In this document: piece by piece, positions 1,812 to 56,937 of the stretch
Numbering within the stretch: position 1 is the first letter of the stretch
Layout of the letters: each line of letters begins with the position of its first letter
Source: Lepidodermella squamata
Lineage: Eukaryota; Animalia; Gastrotricha
Direction: 5' to 3'
NCBI GenBank assembly: GCA_047495785.1
Contig: JBLDXI010000029.1
Location: 930,001-994,000, forward strand
Length of the DNA stretch: 64,000 nt
Made by a program: the position numbers and the translations under genes
The notes under the pieces: model-generated
What the model was told of the DNA's origin: nothing
Seen by the model: only the letters and a program-made list of their open reading frames with translations
Database searches by the model: none

Positions 1812-2960
1812 ATGAGTGTCAATAAGCGCATTCTTTGCGCGGCTTGGAATCAGGATTATGGTTGCTTCGCGTGTGGGTTCGAAAATGGATTCAGAATCTT
1901 CAACACTGATCCTTTGAAGGAGCGACAGAAGGTTGAATTCACCGATGGTGGAATCGGAATTGTTGAGATGCTTTATCGATGCAACTATATTGCTCTAGTT
2001 GGTGGAGGCCAGCGGCCTAGATTTCCGCCAAATCGTGTGGTAATATGGGACGATTTAAAACGAGAAACAATCATCGAATTAGATTTCCCATCCCCTGTCA
2101 GAGCTGTCAGATTGCGCCGAGATAGAATTGTGGTCGTATTGGACTCTGTAATTCGACTGTTCACATTCACTCAGCAGCCTAAGGAGTTACATAGCTTCGA
2201 AACTCTGTATAATCCTAGGGGCGTATGTGCCCTTAGCCCAGCTAGTACCAACTCCTTACTGGCGATACCTTCACGAAGTAAAGTTGGATCCATCGACCTC
2301 ATCGATCTTGCCGACGCTGATAGAGCCCCATTGGTTATAGCTGCTCACAATTCTTCATTGCGAACCTTGAGTTTCAACTCCGTCGGTAGTTTGCTAGCAT
2401 CAGCCTCTGAGAAGGGAACTTTGGTGCGGTTATTTGATACGAAAACTGGTCAATGCTGCCAAGAAGTTCGCAGAGGAACGCAACCAGCTACCGTCTATAG
2501 CATCGCCTTTTCTCCTGATAGCAATTTCTTCTGTGTGGCGAGCGACCGCGGGACGGTTCATGTTTTTGAAACGGAGTCAGTTCCAAAGGAATCACCGGAT
2601 GGCGAGCAAGCTCCTTTGTCGTCTTCACCCCCTTCCAATGGCTCGAATAACAAATTCACCAAATTACGCAATAAAATTGCTGGCTCCGCTGGAGCAAAAC
2701 ATTCCTTTGTCAAGCTACCCGTTCAGTCACAAAGCAGCGGGTTATGTTTGGCGGCATTCGGTAACTCCTCGGAGACCATTGCTGTTATAAGTACAGATGG
2801 CTCATACGCACGGTATCGTCTGCATTTTCCAAGTAAAAGGCTGGTGAATTCCAATGGAAATCTCCAGTCTTGGGACTCCGCGGGCGGTGTCACCGCTACA
2901 CGTGATCTATTTGCACATTTTCTCGACTTGCGCGAACAAAGCTACGGCGACGGTATCTAA
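1812..2960 (+). CDS. WDR45B: PROPPIN WD40 autophagy protein WIPI3/WDR45B (ATG18 family), single exon
   Basis: NQDYGCFACGFENGFRIFNTDPLKE, EMLYRCNYIALVGGG, ASASEKGTLVRLFD, and the phosphoinositide-binding VRRG (F/LRRG) motif. Confidence 0.93.
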   Translation: MSVNKRILCAAWNQDYGCFACGFENGFRIFNTDPLKERQKVEFTDGGIGIVEMLYRCNYIALVGGGQRPRFPPNRVVIWDDLKRETIIELDFPSPVRAVRLRRDRIVVVLDSVIRLFTFTQQPKELHSFETLYNPRGVCALSPASTNSLLAIPSRSKVGSIDLIDLADADRAPLVIAAHNSSLRTLSFNSVGSLLASASEKGTLVRLFDTKTGQCCQEVRRGTQPATVYSIAFSPDSNFFCVASDRGTVHVFETESVPKESPDGEQAPLSSSPPSNGSNNKFTKLRNKIAGSAGAKHSFVKLPVQSQSSGLCLAAFGNSSETIAVISTDGSYARYRLHFPSKRLVNSNGNLQSWDSAGGVTATRDLFAHFLDLREQSYGDGI

Positions 2961-3380
2961 AAACTTCAGTTATTTATTATTTCTATAAATTTGTGGAAAT
3001 TGAGTTGTTGTACGAATATAATGCTATAATATGTCTGCTTTTCTCTTATTCTTTCGACGGATTGAAACAAAAATTGATTTTCAGTGCTATGCACGTGGAG
3101 GGGTTTCCTCTTCCTGAGGCAGCTTGTATAAAAACCGTGTCAAATCGGTGCTACTTCAAGTTTGTACGTGTTTTTTTTCGTGAAGTTGGTTATGCAGAGA
3201 TAACGACGATAGATGATCGATAATTGTTGCAATCGAATAATTTAATTATTGCCAAATAATCTATTCTTATCCAAATTGAAGATTGAAAATCACGAGTAAA
3301 ATTCCTCTATTACAAATTAGAAATCGATTGCGTATAATTAATTATTTTTTGTTAATAGGGTTTGTGTTAAAAAGCAAACT

Positions 3381-50166: not shown

Positions 50167-50241
50167 TCAACGGCCGAAAAGCCAACTATTTATTGACAGT
50201 TAGTCAAGTGCGGCCAAGTTCGCGCTCGGAGTAAGTCACCA
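50167..50241 (-). pseudogene. Internal fragment of a U3 snoRNA paralog (box B to the start of box C)
   Basis: Reverse complement of 50191-50227 matches 56811-56847 at 35/37 nt; the flanking TGGTGACT and TCGGCCGTTGA are also shared. Confidence 0.75.
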
Positions 50242-50433: not shown

Positions 50434-51345
50434 AAAATTAATTAAGCAAAATTGAGCAGTTATTTCATTCGATCAATCAAGTGTGTAGCGTCGCAATTTA
50501 GATCTTCCCGAACTTTCGATTGATCGTGTAGCCAGAAAAGTGGGTGACCTGACCGCCGTTGGGAGCCCAAACAGCGACAATAACGAAATGATTGCCGACA
50601 TCGGCGATAAATGGACATGCCGGATCGGCGGCCTGCTGGAAGCCGGCCAGGTGCAATCAGCTGAACCGTTCAGGTGAGCTTTAATGTTGGCTTCATTCGG
50701 CTCCCGATTCTTCAAAACGAGAACACACAAAACTGCGCAACCTAAAAACAGGTTAAGATAACTGATATTTAGAATTTAGAAGCTAGCAGATTGGGAGCTT
50801 TCTACCTTTGGCACATGCCCAACGGCCACTTCCTGTATAGCTAGTTCTTTGCGGCTTGCCTTTCCAGTGACCGGAGCACGTAATGCTGAGCGTATTTCTG
50901 ATCGTAAGGCGTTGCTGGTATAGGTTGCAAACTTGCGCACAGTATACAGATATGAACTAAAGGTATATGTGGGATTCACTATTAGACTTCAGCTAATGAT
51001 CGTTTGATGTAGCTCCAGCAGTACGAGCTTTGTAATGCGCAGATTCTATCGAACGATCATTCGGTAGATGAGCCTTCATTGTGGACGCAAGATGAGCCAT
51101 ACAGAAATGACGCGATGTTGTGATTCATCTTACGATAAAACTATTGATCACATGCTGACGAACATGCTTCCATCAACGAGATTTTGTATGCCAAAATGAG
51201 TTTCTATGCGGCTCGCGTTCGATTCTCGTCGAAACGATTTGTAAACGATTTTTTCAAAAAGATGTAGACTATGCAAATTGTTTGCCTGAATCCGATACTT
51301 CTCATTCGACAACGCGCTCGAGCTGGCTGGCCCTCCTTCATTTCT

Positions 51346-51376
51346 AAGATCATACTTCTTGGGATCAATACTTTAT
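51346..51376 (+). ncRNA. U3: U3 snoRNA 5' end (box A' and start of box A), cut off by the LINE insertion
   Basis: AAGATCATACTTCTTGGGATCA resembles the conserved U3 5' end AAGA(C/U)(U/C)AUACUU...GGAUCA and lies exactly at the 5' flank of the LINE. Confidence 0.75.
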
Positions 51377-51428
51377 TGATACCGACGGCGACGATGACGA
51401 GGATGACGATGAAGACGAAGATGGCGAA

Positions 51429-52928
51429 ATGGAGTGGACAACTATCAACGAAAACTCGAAGTCCAAGTTCCGTATCGTGATAGTCGACGGAATATCGCCG
51501 ATTTTCTCGACCATCTACATGTGCCTAAGAGAACTGAACCGCGTGGCCCCAGACGTGAAACATGTTCGTGTCTGGGTGTATCCCCGTGGCGCTTTTGGCA
51601 TGCTCTGCAAGGATTTAGCCAGCGTCAACGCCGTCTTGAGCAAGGCCAACTGGCCTGAGAACGCCTTTGGCGGGAGAGCCCGACCACACAGGCCATCCAA
51701 GGTAGAGATTGATGAGGCACCAGGTGCCAAAGCGGTGTTGGAAGCGCAAGTCCCAACCGGCGAGCAAGCGGCGCGCATGGAAGCTCGAGCCAAGCATTTG
51801 GACGAAGACCGGCGTAAAGCCGTGTGTGTCAACTTCTTCGACGGGGCCTCTGTTGACGACATCCTCGACGGTTGGGAAGACGTCGTAGATCAGGTCTGGC
51901 CTATTAAAGGCACTACGACGTGCTTCGGGGTCCTCTGCAAATCGGTGCGTCTCTGTGAGGAACTCGTGGCCAGAGGGCGCGACTTTCTTGGCCTCCGCAT
52001 AGCCGCTAGGGTGTGGCGATCCGACCCAGAGGTAGAGATATGCGGCAGGTGTCTCAACATCGGCCATCTCACTGGGAACTGTCGAGCAGCTCTCCGGTGT
52101 GCTACTTGTGGGCAAGAAGGCCACGACAGCAGTAGTTGCAGGCAACAGGCGAAGAGGTGTGCAAGGTGTGATGGAAGTCATTCCGGCTTCTACAGAGGTT
52201 GCCGTATCGTTAAGAACGAGGCCGAGCGTCGCCGCAAAGCCGATGAAGCCGAAGCCAGAGCCATCCGGAACCGAAGTGCCGGCGACGCCACCCTCCGAAA
52301 TGGCATGTCATTCGCAGGAGCGACCGGAGGAAGACCAGTACCGCCACCAGTACCACCACCAGTACCGCCACCAGCACCACCAGGTTTCGAAGGATCTCAG
52401 CCCAACCCAGGGCTAGCAACTCGCAACATTCAGCCGAACGACTCGCTATCAACAGCTGAGCGATCTGAACTAACAGCCTTGCGCTTCAGCGTAGCCGCAC
52501 AGGCGGCTGAAATTGACCGATTGAACAACTCCGTCGAGCGCCTCACTGCCGCACTAGAGAGGCTGATGAATCAAGGTCTGCCAGCGCCACCAGTAGTCGC
52601 AGCACAGCCTTTTCCGACACAAGAGATGGAGGATAGGCTGTTCAATAGGATTATGGACGCCTTCAACCGGGCCAAGATCGCAGGTGATATGCGGGCCCAA
52701 GCGTTCCCACAGCATATCATTGCTCGCCCAGCCATGATGGCTTCGCCGAACATGGCCGTCCAATCTCCTTCGCACTACAGCGTCGAAAATCAAACTTCAC
52801 CACCCTTTCAATGGGACGCTGGTCAGCTTGGTCAACCCATGGTGATCCAGTCGCAGTTCAGCCAACAGCCTACTTTCGTTCAGCGACCATTCTCTGGAGT
52901 GCCCCTTCAATACTCCAATAATGCCTAG
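51429..52928 (+). CDS. LINE ORF1 (gag-like nucleic acid chaperone)
   Basis: Three knuckles CGRCLNIGHLTGNC, CATCGQEGHDSSSC, CARCDGSHSGFYRGC, then a Pro-rich linker and coiled coil. Confidence 0.92.
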   Translation: MEWTTINENSKSKFRIVIVDGISPIFSTIYMCLRELNRVAPDVKHVRVWVYPRGAFGMLCKDLASVNAVLSKANWPENAFGGRARPHRPSKVEIDEAPGAKAVLEAQVPTGEQAARMEARAKHLDEDRRKAVCVNFFDGASVDDILDGWEDVVDQVWPIKGTTTCFGVLCKSVRLCEELVARGRDFLGLRIAARVWRSDPEVEICGRCLNIGHLTGNCRAALRCATCGQEGHDSSSCRQQAKRCARCDGSHSGFYRGCRIVKNEAERRRKADEAEARAIRNRSAGDATLRNGMSFAGATGGRPVPPPVPPPVPPPAPPGFEGSQPNPGLATRNIQPNDSLSTAERSELTALRFSVAAQAAEIDRLNNSVERLTAALERLMNQGLPAPPVVAAQPFPTQEMEDRLFNRIMDAFNRAKIAGDMRAQAFPQHIIARPAMMASPNMAVQSPSHYSVENQTSPPFQWDAGQLGQPMVIQSQFSQQPTFVQRPFSGVPLQYSNNA

Positions 52929-55903
52929 TCTTAGTACACTTAGAAAAAGTAGAATCATCGTAATCCAGTGGAATTGCCAGGGCATCAAGGCGAAAAGAGC
53001 TGAACTTCTCCACATTATAGAGCAATATGGGCCTAATGTCATCCTGTTAAACGAGACATGGCTAAAGTTCGGCGAGAAATTCGACCTCCCTGGCTACACT
53101 GCTTTCCGCGTAGATAGACTAGGTGCGTCCGGGCTAAACTGTGGCGGCGTCGCAATCTTCATTAGTCAATCAAAGCCAATACTAGATTGTGCCGAAGTAA
53201 AGTTTGCGCCAGCCTCTAGAGGCGAGTGGCTTGCAGTTGAGCTGCTAGTAGGCGAAGTCAACGCCTCAACGAGAATTACGATTGCCACAGGGTACAATCC
53301 TTCAAATAGCCCATTAGACACATCTTTCATTAGAGAGGTCTTGAGTGATCCGTCTACAAACTCGATCTTCGCTGGCGACTTGAACGCCTGGGCGGAGGAG
53401 CTAGGTTGCGCGGAATGGAACGTTCAGCGAACGGGAAGTGGCGGGCTCTTTTCGGAGTTCCTAAAAACCTCCCCTGTGGTATTGCATAGCTCACCAACTG
53501 CTCCCACGCGGTTCAGGGAAGGTCACGTGTCGCGAGTCTTAGATGTGTGGCTAAGTTCACTGGCTGGTGATAAGTGTTTCAACCGTGCGCCTGCTGTTCT
53601 AGATTGGGTTCCTTCGAAGCGATCATGCCGTCACTATCGCGGGCCTCACACTCGTGCTCCCGGAGCGGAACTCCTGTTCACCGTTGGCCAATGCCTCGGT
53701 GCCGGCAGCCGCTCGGGACGTTCGTTTCGACTTTTTGAACGCCGACTGGCCTGAATACCAGAGAGTATGCGCGGAGAAGATAGCGCCAGTCGTTCGCCCA
53801 AAAGGCGGGGACTCGGTCAGGGCGCTGGACGTCTTCGCCGCAAGTATCTCCGAGGTAATAATGAGTAGCGCGAAAACCACGCTAACTCGTGTGCCGGTGG
53901 CTAAATTGCCTAAGGTACGTCTAAGCCACGCTGTAAAGCGGGCTATCGAGGCAAGGAATCGGTGTGACAGGAAAAATCGGAACGAACGCTCTGCTGCGTC
54001 TAAAGCGGCTTTAAATGCTGCGACACGGCAGGTGGCGCGAGAGGTCGCGTTAGAGGCGGATAAAAAATGTCGGCGACGGTTGAACCACATAGCACAGCTT
54101 TTTCAGGCGCAGCAAGCTGCCCTGGCGTGGCATCACGCACAGCGTATTTTGGGGGAATCGAAAGGCTCGCAACGCGTGATCCCCACCCTTGAATTAGCGA
54201 ACGGGAAGAAGGTGACTGCAGACCCAGAGAAGGCGAGGGTTTTTGCTGAAAATTGGGCGCCGACGTTCCAGGCCGCGCCTCGTAGCTCACCGCACCAGGC
54301 GGACCAAGAATTTTGGGACTCGATCGACCAAGCATGCGAGGTAGACGAAGAGCTCAACGCCTCTCTAACAATACCAGATAAGTTAGAGGTCATGATTTCT
54401 AGGAACGCCTTCAACTCCCAGCTTGCCCGGTTGAAGCTTAAAGCTCCTGGGGAAGATGGGATCCTCAACCCGTTGATTAAGAACGCCCCACCACCTCTCC
54501 TAGAGGCTATCCTTCTCCTGTTTAATTTATCTTTGAACGCCGGCTATCTGCCAGCTGCTTGGAAAATTGGAATTGTGGTACCGGTGCCCAAGGCGGGGAA
54601 ATCCCCACGGTCCCTGGATGGGTATAGGCCAGTTTCCTTAACCAGCTGCATGGCAAAGCTTCTGGAGGCCGTCGTGGCTGGGTTCATTCTCGAGTTCTGC
54701 TTGCGGAACAAGATTTTGACGCCGAGCCAAGTCGGGTTCCAGAAGTGGCTGTCAGTTTTGGATGCCATCCTCAGGCTTATGCACGACATCACAGACGGTT
54801 TCGTGCATAAGGATGAGTTGGGCAGACCCGATAAATTAACTACAGTTGTGGCGTTCCTAGACTATAAGGCAGCTTTTGATTCCATATGGCACAACGGTTT
54901 ACGCATGGTCTTAAAAGGCCTTGGCCTACCCGTGGCCGTTGTGCGATGGATCTCAGATTTTTTACGCGACAGGCGTATGCGAGTCAGAGTAGGTGATAGC
55001 TGTAGTGAGGATGTCGAAGTAGCTTGCGGAGTCCCTCAGGGATCACCATTATCCCCGATACTCTTCATCATCTACACATCTTCGTCCCTCCCAGCGGAGG
55101 TAGACAAGGACGACGCCCTCAAGAGAACTGCCGCGGCGGCATACGCCGACGACCAGGCTGTGTGGGCTACTGGGCGACCGGCCCCACTCGCAACTGCTCG
55201 TGTCCAAGCGGCACTTCGGGTCACAGAACGCTGGTCTCAGCGCTGGAGACTTGACCTGAACCCGAGGAAGTGCGAGTGGGTCGCATTCGGCGCCAACGTC
55301 AACCACACAGCTGGTCAACTCCAGTTGGGAGGCATCTGCCTGCCTAGAGTGCAACAGTTCAAGTACCTAGGTGTTTGGCTGTCCAAGCACTTGTGCTGGA
55401 CGCCGCACTTAGAGCACGTCAGCGCACGAGCCCTTCCTCGTATTTTCGCCCTTTTTCGTGGCAGGGTAAAGACTCACCCCACCTTGGGTCTCCTGTTCTA
55501 CAAGAGCGTCATCCGGCCGCTGTTGGAATTCGGTGCCCCGGCGTTCGCCAACTCGAAGCCACAGTTCATCGAAAAACTGGCGGTCTTAGAACGGCGGGCC
55601 CTTAAGATCATCTTGGGTCTCCCACGCCGGTGCCCGAATGAGATCTATCAGCGGCGGTTGAAGGCCACTTTTCCGGAGTTCCAGCTGATCGAAGAACGTT
55701 TGTCCACCCTATCGTTCAACTGCTTCAACAGGGCGCTTGAAGCAGGTAGCGTGCTAGGCGAAATAGTTCGTCAGAGTCGCGATAGGCCCGTGCCGGAGAG
55801 TATATCCCCAGTGCGTTTCTTTCTTGACCATCTATTGGGAGCTGGGCCTCTACCTTCGGTTCGATCGTCCTTTGATCGACTTCCAGCGATCCTAGCAGTT
55901 TAG
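52921..55903 (+). CDS. LINE ORF2, AP endonuclease plus reverse transcriptase, with one +1 frameshift at approx. 53603-53617
   Basis: IQWNCQG, LNETWL, AGDLNA, RVLDV, then SDH in the next frame. RT motifs KAPGEDG, YRPVSLTS, FLDYKAAFDSI, GVPQGSPLSP, YADD, KYLGV. Confidence 0.93.
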
Positions 55904-56723
55904 GCTGTTGTCGGGTGTTAGAGGCGGCAAGCCAGCGGCGGGTGGCGGTCCACGGAAGCAACGACCCGAGCGCAGCTTGTCGCGGGGAGGGCAGGTTCGT
56001 TGCGGGTGGCGATGAGAGCATCGCTCCCTGCACGGCCGGACCTTTCCGGTTCCTGACTAGTGGCGGATAGATGCTATCTGTGCGCTGTAGGTTCCCTCTC
56101 AGTTCCTCTCTTCTATCTTATTTCTTTCTCTAGTCCCCTAGGTCTTTTCAAATTATCTTTTCAAAATCTCTATGTATGTGAAAGGCAATCGGTTCGGGTC
56201 CGGTTAAATCGTATTTTGTTATGTGCCGCAAGAGGCCCCGGTTCGAGTCCGGCTATGTTTTCTGTTTTCTTGTCCTAGATCTTAGACTTTTTAAAAGTGA
56301 ATTGTAATGCCGAGGCATGGTCCTTAAGGCATGTTCTTAGTTTGCGGATCGTCGATCCTGGTAGCAGTTGGGCCTCGGGTGGCGGCACGCACCAAACGGC
56401 GGCCCGAGGCGATGAGTGGTTGGTTCCTTTTGGTGGCTGATGGACTATCTGTAGATTTTCGTCGATGCAGGCAGCGGTTGGGCCTCGGGTGGCGGCACGC
56501 GCAAAGCGGCGGCCCGAGGCGTTGGCTTGGAAGTATTCCCGTATTAACATTATAATGAACACTGTATATTTATAGTTATTTGTCATTCTGTCGACCTCGC
56601 TTAATACGCGGAGCCGTAGCTGTGTATATTCAATTTGCTAACACTGAGGGGCCACTAACAGCCCGGTAATCTCCTATTTAGCCTGCGGGCTGAGGAATTG
56701 TTTTTCTAATTTACCTAATAAAC

Positions 56724-56937
56724 CAACACTTCATATTAAGTTTTGCCCCAACGTCAGCCTCATCTGACGACAAACCCAAACCGCGATGACGAGACGTGGT
56801 GACTGGCCCTGAGCGCGAACTTGGCCGCACTTGACTGGCTGTCAATAGCCGGTCTCGTCGGCCGTTGATGAACGTTCCGGGATGGTGGCTCCTTAACTGG
56901 GGCCACTTCCGGAGGGGTCAGTCGCTTTCAGAGCGGC
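56724..56937 (+). ncRNA. U3: U3 snoRNA 3' portion (hinge, boxes C', B, C, D)
   Basis: AAACCGC-GATGA (C', 56785-56789), TGAGCGCGAA (B, 56810-56819), TTGATGA (C, 56865-56871), CAGA in place of CTGA (D, 56929-56932), closing stem CCGC/GCGG, long stem GACTGGCCC/GGGTCAGTC. Order and spacing match metazoan U3. Confidence 0.85.

Follow-up and report, generated by a model that had tools for sequence, protein, structure and literature searches.

We analysed a 64,000-nt window of the genome of the gastrotrich Lepidodermella squamata (GenBank assembly GCA_047495785.1, contig JBLDXI010000029.1, positions 930,001 to 994,000), in which a long interspersed nuclear element (LINE) splits a U3 small nucleolar RNA (snoRNA) gene. 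The element belongs to a family, here called A, that is probably a LINE targeted to small-RNA-type genes (we put the probability at roughly 0.75): its copies appear to enter a T-rich site 24–33 nucleotides (nt) past the start of U3 and of three unnamed multicopy small-RNA-like gene families, labelled X, Y and Z, and to use the promoter of the host gene. Judged from the copies in the assembly, family A is not aimed at U3 in particular; U3 appears to be a minor target, and the U3 copy a dead insertion.

Insertion sites of family A

The flank analysis covers the nine family A insertion events that can be resolved. Seven of them lie in sense at one fixed nucleotide per gene, 24–33 nt downstream of the start in four kinds of small-RNA-type gene. 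In the window, the host gene is U3, with U3 sequence on both flanks of the element, as an earlier note on this DNA had observed. The features of the split gene, in window coordinates, are the following.

51271..51278, + strand: U3 promoter box (ATGCAAAT), 75 nt 5′ of the U3 start
51346..51377, + strand: U3 head, the first 32 nt with boxes A′ and A, identical to intact paralogs at 31 of 32 nt
51374..51377, + strand: left copy of the TATT target-site duplication, same letters as at 56734-56737
51378..56733, + strand: family A LINE, 5′-truncated, 5,356 nt; its 5′ end falls inside open reading frame 1 (ORF1) of full-length copies, and its 3′ end, ...AATAAACCAACACTTCA, is common to all copies
56734..56737, + strand: right copy of the TATT target-site duplication, a sequence present only once in intact U3
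56738..56937, + strand: U3 body with the hinge and boxes C′, B, C and D, Rfam U3 83.2 bits

The Rfam covariance model for U3 (RF00012), a check that the same note proposed for the joined flanks, gives the 3′ part alone (56720-56937) its 83.2 bits against a gathering score of 34. Intact U3 paralogs, which begin with AAGATCATACTTCTTGGGATCATTACTTTATTAAGTTTTGCC, reach 95-110 bits, and the 121-Mb, 151-contig assembly holds at least 27 matches of 75-110 bits. When the element and one TATT are removed, 51346-51377 and 56738-56937 join into a full-length U3 gene of 232 nt, within the 225-235 nt foreseen earlier, with 97.4% identity to an intact 232-nt paralog (L014, 102 bits) that lies 82 kb off on the same contig. 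The body alone is 98% identical to a neighbouring paralog (C29:1068743-1068942).

Both junctions carry TATT, of which intact U3 genes have a single copy, and it thus represents a 4-nt target duplication. Alignment to the intact paralogs places the breakpoint after U3 nt 32. The split is real and precise, and its position is just 3′ of box A (GGGATCA...), not within the box as had been thought. An imperfect 11-nt duplication suspected at the junctions has another origin: CAACACTTCAT (56724-56734) is the conserved end of the element, ...AATAAACCAACACTTCA, plus the first T of the duplication. Since every family A copy ends with ...AATAAACCAACACTTCA whatever its flank, CAACACTTCAT is not a copy of U3 51366-51376.

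Gene X carries three clean independent events, which differ in their 5′ truncation points and all lie at ...CCCCGTAC(TTAT)GACTC with a TTAT duplication. Specifically, the empty site (L038) reads ...CCCCGTAC TTAT GACTCAAC..., and filled sites with TTAT on both sides are found on contig C42, in a copy truncated at the window equivalent of ~56021, and at C54:3032749, in a copy truncated at ~55777. Gene X also holds a near-full-length tandem pair on C74 and two rearranged copies on C54.

The genome has 22 matches to the first 26 nt of gene Y, of which two are inexact, and 20 Y copies are uninterrupted. Intact Y reads AGCTTAATGACTCCCGGCCTAGGC TAT GCTTTCATGATTTTGG, and two events, one a 305-nt fragment (C32) and the other a longer copy (C1), are located at ...GGC(TAT)GCTTTC. 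Gene Z has 13 copies of ~190 nt (loci L090-L092). Its intact form reads CACACGCGAACTCTATTACTTCAGCTGTTTAC / TTAGCAATAAG, and a full-length A copy on C15 is in place at the slash.

U3 accounts for one of the ~13 A copies, and one of the 30 U3 heads in the assembly carries the family. These counts bear on the proposal that the family is specific for U3 and borrows the promoter of that gene. The window copy does lie in sense 32 nt past the U3 start, and a second U3 gene, at C33:1782581-1782896 (head 1782581-1782602, body from 1782691), shows ~78 additional nt, at 1782613-1782690, that separate U3 nt 32 from nt 33. However, none of the other ~12 family A copies and none of the four copies of a sister family, B, is found in U3, 28 of the 30 U3 heads run directly into their body, the 78-nt insert does not match the tails of family A, family B or a third, spliced-leader LINE family, and the U3 copy is truncated and frame-broken. 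A U3-specific family is extremely improbable on this evidence. The broader idea, a targeted sense element that borrows a small-RNA promoter, appears to hold for family A at large, and only the special role of U3 falls away. For U3 itself the event is unremarkable: a dead insertion has disabled one gene out of about 30.

Chance insertion by a LINE without target preference would account for the two A copies found outside recognisable genes, but it would not account for repeated independent landings at the same nucleotide in X (at least three) and Y (two), together with those in Z, U3 and U5, all of them in sense; we consider it very improbable. The earlier note had reasoned that unrelated flanks around other copies would mean random insertion. 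Other copies are indeed outside U3, but their flanks are not random, with seven of nine events at a fixed nucleotide of small-RNA-type genes, as expected of a targeted family.

Leaders and transcription

Three full-length A copies with readable 5′ ends begin with Z nt 1-26 or 1-32, followed by TCGAATTCTACTT.... The Z leaders come in two variants, one per Z gene type, with the L092 type stopping at ...TTCACCT(A) and the L090 type at ...GCTGTT(T/A)AC, and both variants stop exactly at the family A integration nucleotide in Z. In the C33 copy, Y nt 1-26 stand in front of the Z leader and end at the Y integration site. Furthermore, both the Z and the Y leaders begin where the ATGCAAAT box predicts the start of the gene.

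The leaders point to transcription from the promoter of the host gene. A copy resident in Z would have been transcribed from the Z start, leaving offspring that carry Z nt 1-32; one such Z-led offspring would then have landed in Y and been transcribed from the Y start, and its own offspring would have landed on C33. Read in this way, the stacked Y-before-Z leaders would be a rare direct record of the successive homes of an element, and the leaders may show where transcription begins in three RNA gene families not yet catalogued.

Leaders could also form without transcription from a host promoter, by template switching of the kind seen in U6-L1 chimeras, here onto abundant Z or Y RNA. Template switching onto small nuclear RNAs (snRNAs) is documented for L1 and has been proposed for the heads of snRNA-derived short interspersed nuclear elements (SINEs) (PMC4494074). 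A jump of this kind, however, would begin at a variable point, often the 3′ end of the small RNA, and copy back to the 5′ end, whereas the leaders always end exactly where family A integrates (nt 26 or 32 of Z, nt 26 of Y), and the C15 copy in Z has that very junction. Template switching is thus a quite unlikely source of the leaders, and transcription from host promoters is the reading that we carry forward.

Common position and choice of site

The hosts of family A share a promoter box and a distance. The ATGCAAAT (or ATGCAAAC) box is located at −72 to −75 in seven of seven U3 genes examined, at −70/−71 in Y and at −72 in Z, and in X it lies 74-75 nt before a point 28 nt upstream of TTAT. 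If the box-derived start is taken as nt 1, the last nucleotide before the nick is nt 28 in U3, nt 24 in Y, nt 32 in Z (nt 27 for Z genes of the short type) and, approximately, nt 28 in X. The sites in U3, X, Y and Z have in common a pyrimidine with T(T)A(T) after it, and no extended likeness besides. By our own estimate, ~200 such genes × 16 nt × one strand make up roughly 1e-5 of the oriented genome positions, and seven of nine events in a 10-nt band after the start would, on that estimate, be far beyond chance.

A family specific for a short motif of its main host (X or Z) might produce this pattern, with the U3 copy a stray look-alike and the shared distance a coincidence or a result of target ancestry. 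The sites are loosely alike, with GTAC/TTAT in X, TTAC/TTAG in Z and TACT/TTAT or ACTT/TATT in U3, and the landing nucleotide is exact within each gene. Nevertheless, the common motif comprises only ~4-6 nt, the Y site (AGGC/TATG) is a poor fit, and strings of this kind number many thousands in the 121 Mb; even so, seven of nine events lie in sense 24-33 nt past the start of four unalike genes. Recognition of a short motif by itself is therefore unlikely. Because a motif of 4-6 nt cannot alone explain these events, we favour a loose endonuclease preference combined with a promoter-proximal positional cue.

Under this combined reading, the integration site would consist of a pyrimidine and then T(T)AT, duplications span 3-4 nt, and the cycle may be described in four steps. 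The element lands at about +30, as the junctions themselves show; it would then be transcribed from the host promoter by a polymerase that tolerates T runs, as the leaders suggest, the full-length copies seemingly having no promoter of their own; the anatomy of the element suggests that target-primed reverse transcription would follow, without a poly(A) tail; and the new site would be chosen by the loose motif and a cue tied to promoter-proximal position.

We also considered whether base pairing between the target and the 3′ tail of the element could provide the priming, and rejected this: the primer strand left by the nick complements the downstream flank, which is unlike the tail.

Several observations weigh against a LINE family targeted to small-RNA-type genes. 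Two A copies, on C33 and at C54:1650634, are in no recognisable gene. X, Y and Z belong to no Rfam family, and a search of the flanks and intact genes against Rfam returned chance microRNA-like matches and two histone stem-loops. The case for X, Y and Z as putative small-RNA genes consists only of their copy number, the shared box, the leader ends and the fold of Z, in which the 3′ half forms a long stem (z = −4.3); X and Y fold no better than shuffled sequences. U5, a host of family B, has no ATGCAAAT box, so the promoter cue for family B cannot be the box itself, and the box is a marker of the hosts of family A rather than a requirement of the lineage. Finally, the T-run ends of U3 genes and the preceding transfer RNA (tRNA) genes hint at polymerase III, yet the LINE contains 25 sense runs of at least four T. 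Polymerase III could therefore not transcribe the LINE, and the polymerase that starts at the Z and Y starts must read through T runs.

Related families

Sister family B is 81-82% identical to family A over the 3′ region, ends with ...CACACTTCTGCAA and is present in four long copies. A full-length family B copy splits a U5 gene between ~nt 26 and nt 30, with the U5 head directly before the element, and another family B copy is flanked by a 15-copy sequence.

Taken together, families A and B may form a guild of LINEs with an apurinic-type (APE-type) endonuclease that find positions +25 to +33 of many small-RNA-type genes (U3, U5, X, Y and Z) without reading a long DNA word, use the host promoter and record former hosts in stacked leaders. 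The cue might be an initiation-linked protein or a nucleic-acid structure. We put this wider reading forward tentatively, as a possibility that falls somewhat short of even odds. What the window adds to it is the hosts, U3 and the three unnamed box-bearing families, and the stacked Y-Z leader.

The spliced-leader LINE family resides in a 5S-linked ribosomal DNA (rDNA) spacer and shares blocks of the 3′ untranslated region (UTR) with family A; its end, ...AATAAACCAAAG, lies just before ...CTGAG/GTTAGT. On small contigs, 5S ribosomal RNA (rRNA) genes and a piece of 18S are located beside this related family (L042 409-527 on the − strand and 2771-3064 on the + strand), which indicates that 5S and a spliced-leader-like gene share an rDNA spacer in Lepidodermella squamata.

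Two further observations concern family B. Its 5′ UTR contains two copies of the motif AATAAACTGGAAGGGCTGCAATTATTTCA (L057 1380-1480), resembling sequence just downstream of Z genes (L089-L092, ~1660-1720). In addition, a contig of sequencing run X3, from another organism or strain, carries a B-like element end (at 56732) and goes on into the flank also seen at copy B1, GGAA(C/T)TTGGTAATAGTG...; either the insertion is orthologous or a relative has used the same target.

Outside the Lepidodermella squamata genome, the best homologs of the element are metagenomic, with at most 44% identity. Among 80 metagenome loci with 22-37% identity, the 20 that were inspected have no snRNA or U3 gene beside the element and only one 18S end.

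Comparison with known elements

To our knowledge, the known LINE families that home to RNA genes have one target each, chosen by sequence. Ty3 and the Dictyostelium elements TRE5 and TRE3 integrate in a position-specific manner at polymerase III genes, landing outside or at the start of tRNA genes via TFIIIB and TFIIIC. Family A resembles them in that its site appears to be set by distance from the transcription start across many genes rather than by a long DNA sequence, and differs in that it lands ~30 nt inside the gene, in sense, and apparently uses the promoter of that gene. If the reading holds, family A would stand as the LINE equivalent of Ty3 and other position-specific elements, and would offer a natural system for studying how a target-primed retrotransposon reads a promoter-proximal position.

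The single-target LINEs of the R1, R2, Keno and Utopia type provide the closest comparisons; family A has at least four hosts, with the nucleotide exact within each. Keno is described in secondary accounts as a Tx1-clade LINE of the APE type that inserts specifically into U2 snRNA genes (Kojima and Fujiwara 2004, as cited in PMC4640811 and PMC4494074). It shares with family A the APE-type endonuclease, the sense orientation and the fixed nucleotide of a multicopy small nuclear RNA gene, but has U2 as its single target, whereas family A enters at least four kinds of gene (U3, X, Y and Z) and sister family B enters U5. The nearest named reverse-transcriptase matches (R1DM-like, jockey, transposon BS), which have 25-27% identity and automatically assigned names, point to Jockey/R1/I, not to Tx1.

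Utopia and NeSL are LINEs with a restriction-like endonuclease, found in U2 genes and spliced-leader exons (PMC4640811). They likewise hit small RNA genes near the 5′ end and show tandem insertions in the target, but each family has one target and another type of endonuclease; that of family A is N-terminal and APE-type. No cysteine-rich or PD..D/ExK tail follows the family A reverse transcriptase, and the endonuclease type excludes both Utopia and NeSL.

R1 and R2 of 28S rDNA are site-specific and dependent on host transcription, as family A probably is too, and resemble it in the absence of a poly(A) tail and in their many dead 5′-truncated copies; family A differs from them in having several non-rDNA hosts and in keeping the leader on the new copy. 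In R2, a ribozyme is reported to remove the upstream rRNA sequence (Eickbush and Eickbush 2010, as cited in PMC4494074), and dependence on a flanking promoter together with carried 5′ extensions has been discussed for snRNA-headed SINEs and R2 (PMC4494074). A 2015 survey of elements in snRNA genes lists only Keno and Utopia, both in U2, and the DNA transposons Dada-U1 and Dada-U6 (PMC4640811). Our literature search found no paper that joins U3 snoRNA with site-specific elements lacking long terminal repeats (non-LTR elements).

Anatomy and state of the inserted LINE

Full-length family A elements measure ~6.3 kb, and other copies reach ~960 nt further upstream than the window copy, with ORF1 starting ~570 nt further upstream. 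The window copy has a G+C content of 54%, compared with 46% in the flank, and comprises the following parts.

51378..52928, + strand: ORF1 with the N-terminal part missing and three CCHC zinc knuckles; open from the junction, first ATG at 51429, stop at 52926-52928
52921..53617, + strand: apurinic-type endonuclease part of ORF2; 37% identity (E = 9e-36) to residues 3-218 of homolog P0001
53603..53617, + strand: frame break of ORF2; the downstream frame has a stop at 53600-53602 and the SDH motif from 53618
53618..55903, + strand: reverse-transcriptase part of ORF2; PF00078 in all homologs
55904..56733, + strand: 3′ UTR, 830 nt; AATAAA 11 nt before the end, no poly(A) tail

ORF2 starts at 52921 and overlaps the ORF1 stop. 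As in an APE-type LINE, it encodes an apurinic-like endonuclease followed by a reverse transcriptase. The endonuclease part gave no match in the PDB; the domain was confirmed instead through P0001, a homolog aligned by the first 227 ORF2 residues that carries PF03372 and PF14529. For the reverse transcriptase, the best homologs are metagenomic (44% identity), and the PDB matches are R2 and LINE-1 ORF2 (E = 1e-13 to 1e-9). A protein atlas returned generic reverse-transcriptase clusters only, and ORF2 of the window element contains neither an RNase H domain nor a C-terminal zinc finger. The usual marks of a LINE are present across the copies: 5′ truncation varies, the 3′ end is constant and the target duplications are TATT, TTAT or TAT.

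The 3′ UTR is 98-100% identical in ~13 copies and 81-82% identical in family B. Specifically, the 3′ 826 nt of the window copy are 98-100% identical to about a dozen copies and two further copies share its 5′ 623 nt at 100% identity; on such identity the window copy is evidently young. The same copy is evidently dead as well, to judge from its start inside ORF1 and the frame break in ORF2, a position at which the contigs of other copies show 1-nt and 3-nt gaps.

The 3′ UTR also contains two copies of a ~60-nt G+C-rich block (window 56340-56410 and 56466-56520). This block recurs in the spliced-leader LINE family and in a tandem array of ~235-nt period on C27 (C27:309923-311394) and C89.

Further observations on the host genes

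The tandem pair on C74 (C74:975315-986860; L052/L027/L056/L026) consists of two A copies head to tail within one X gene. The first 10 nt of each (AACGAATTGG) repeat the adjoining sequence in inverted form, suggesting that the 5′ junction arose from a hairpin or a template jump and was inherited by both copies. Gene X itself has a repeat unit of ~0.8 kb (L038:501-690, − strand).

The full-length C33 copy lies between two histone genes, with an H2A-like 3′ end and histone stem-loops on both sides (L053 240-284, L031 2517-2562). This neighbourhood and the string GATTTTGGCTAG prompted us to consider gene Y as U7 snRNA, a candidate that was rejected: Rfam gave no support, and the Y piece at C33 is a carried leader. 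Gene Y does carry an Sm-like GATTTTGG (L079-L088).

For the split U3 gene, contigs of the sequencing runs that skip the element were considered as an empty allele and ruled out: their shorter side spans only 23-29 letters, their depth reaches 1871, and they represent intact U3 paralogs. Among the sequencing-run contigs listed for the window, none bridges the element junctions. Of the four sequencing runs found, none is recorded as RNA.

The surroundings of the U3 genes look like a polymerase III layout. U3 genes lie ~100 nt 3′ of a tRNA or tRNA-like end with a T run (window 51180-51260; upstream regions of L001-L020), with an A/T-rich stretch near −25 and T4-T7 directly 3′ of most of them. Neither ARAGORN nor Rfam reports a tRNA just upstream of the window U3. 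At window 50167-50241 (− strand), 1.1 kb upstream of the split gene, there is a 75-nt antisense fragment of central U3 with 80% identity. Shorter, divergent U3-like genes are found at C12:966420-966624 and C12:979019-979223, where the head is perfect or nearly so and the body is 75% identical.

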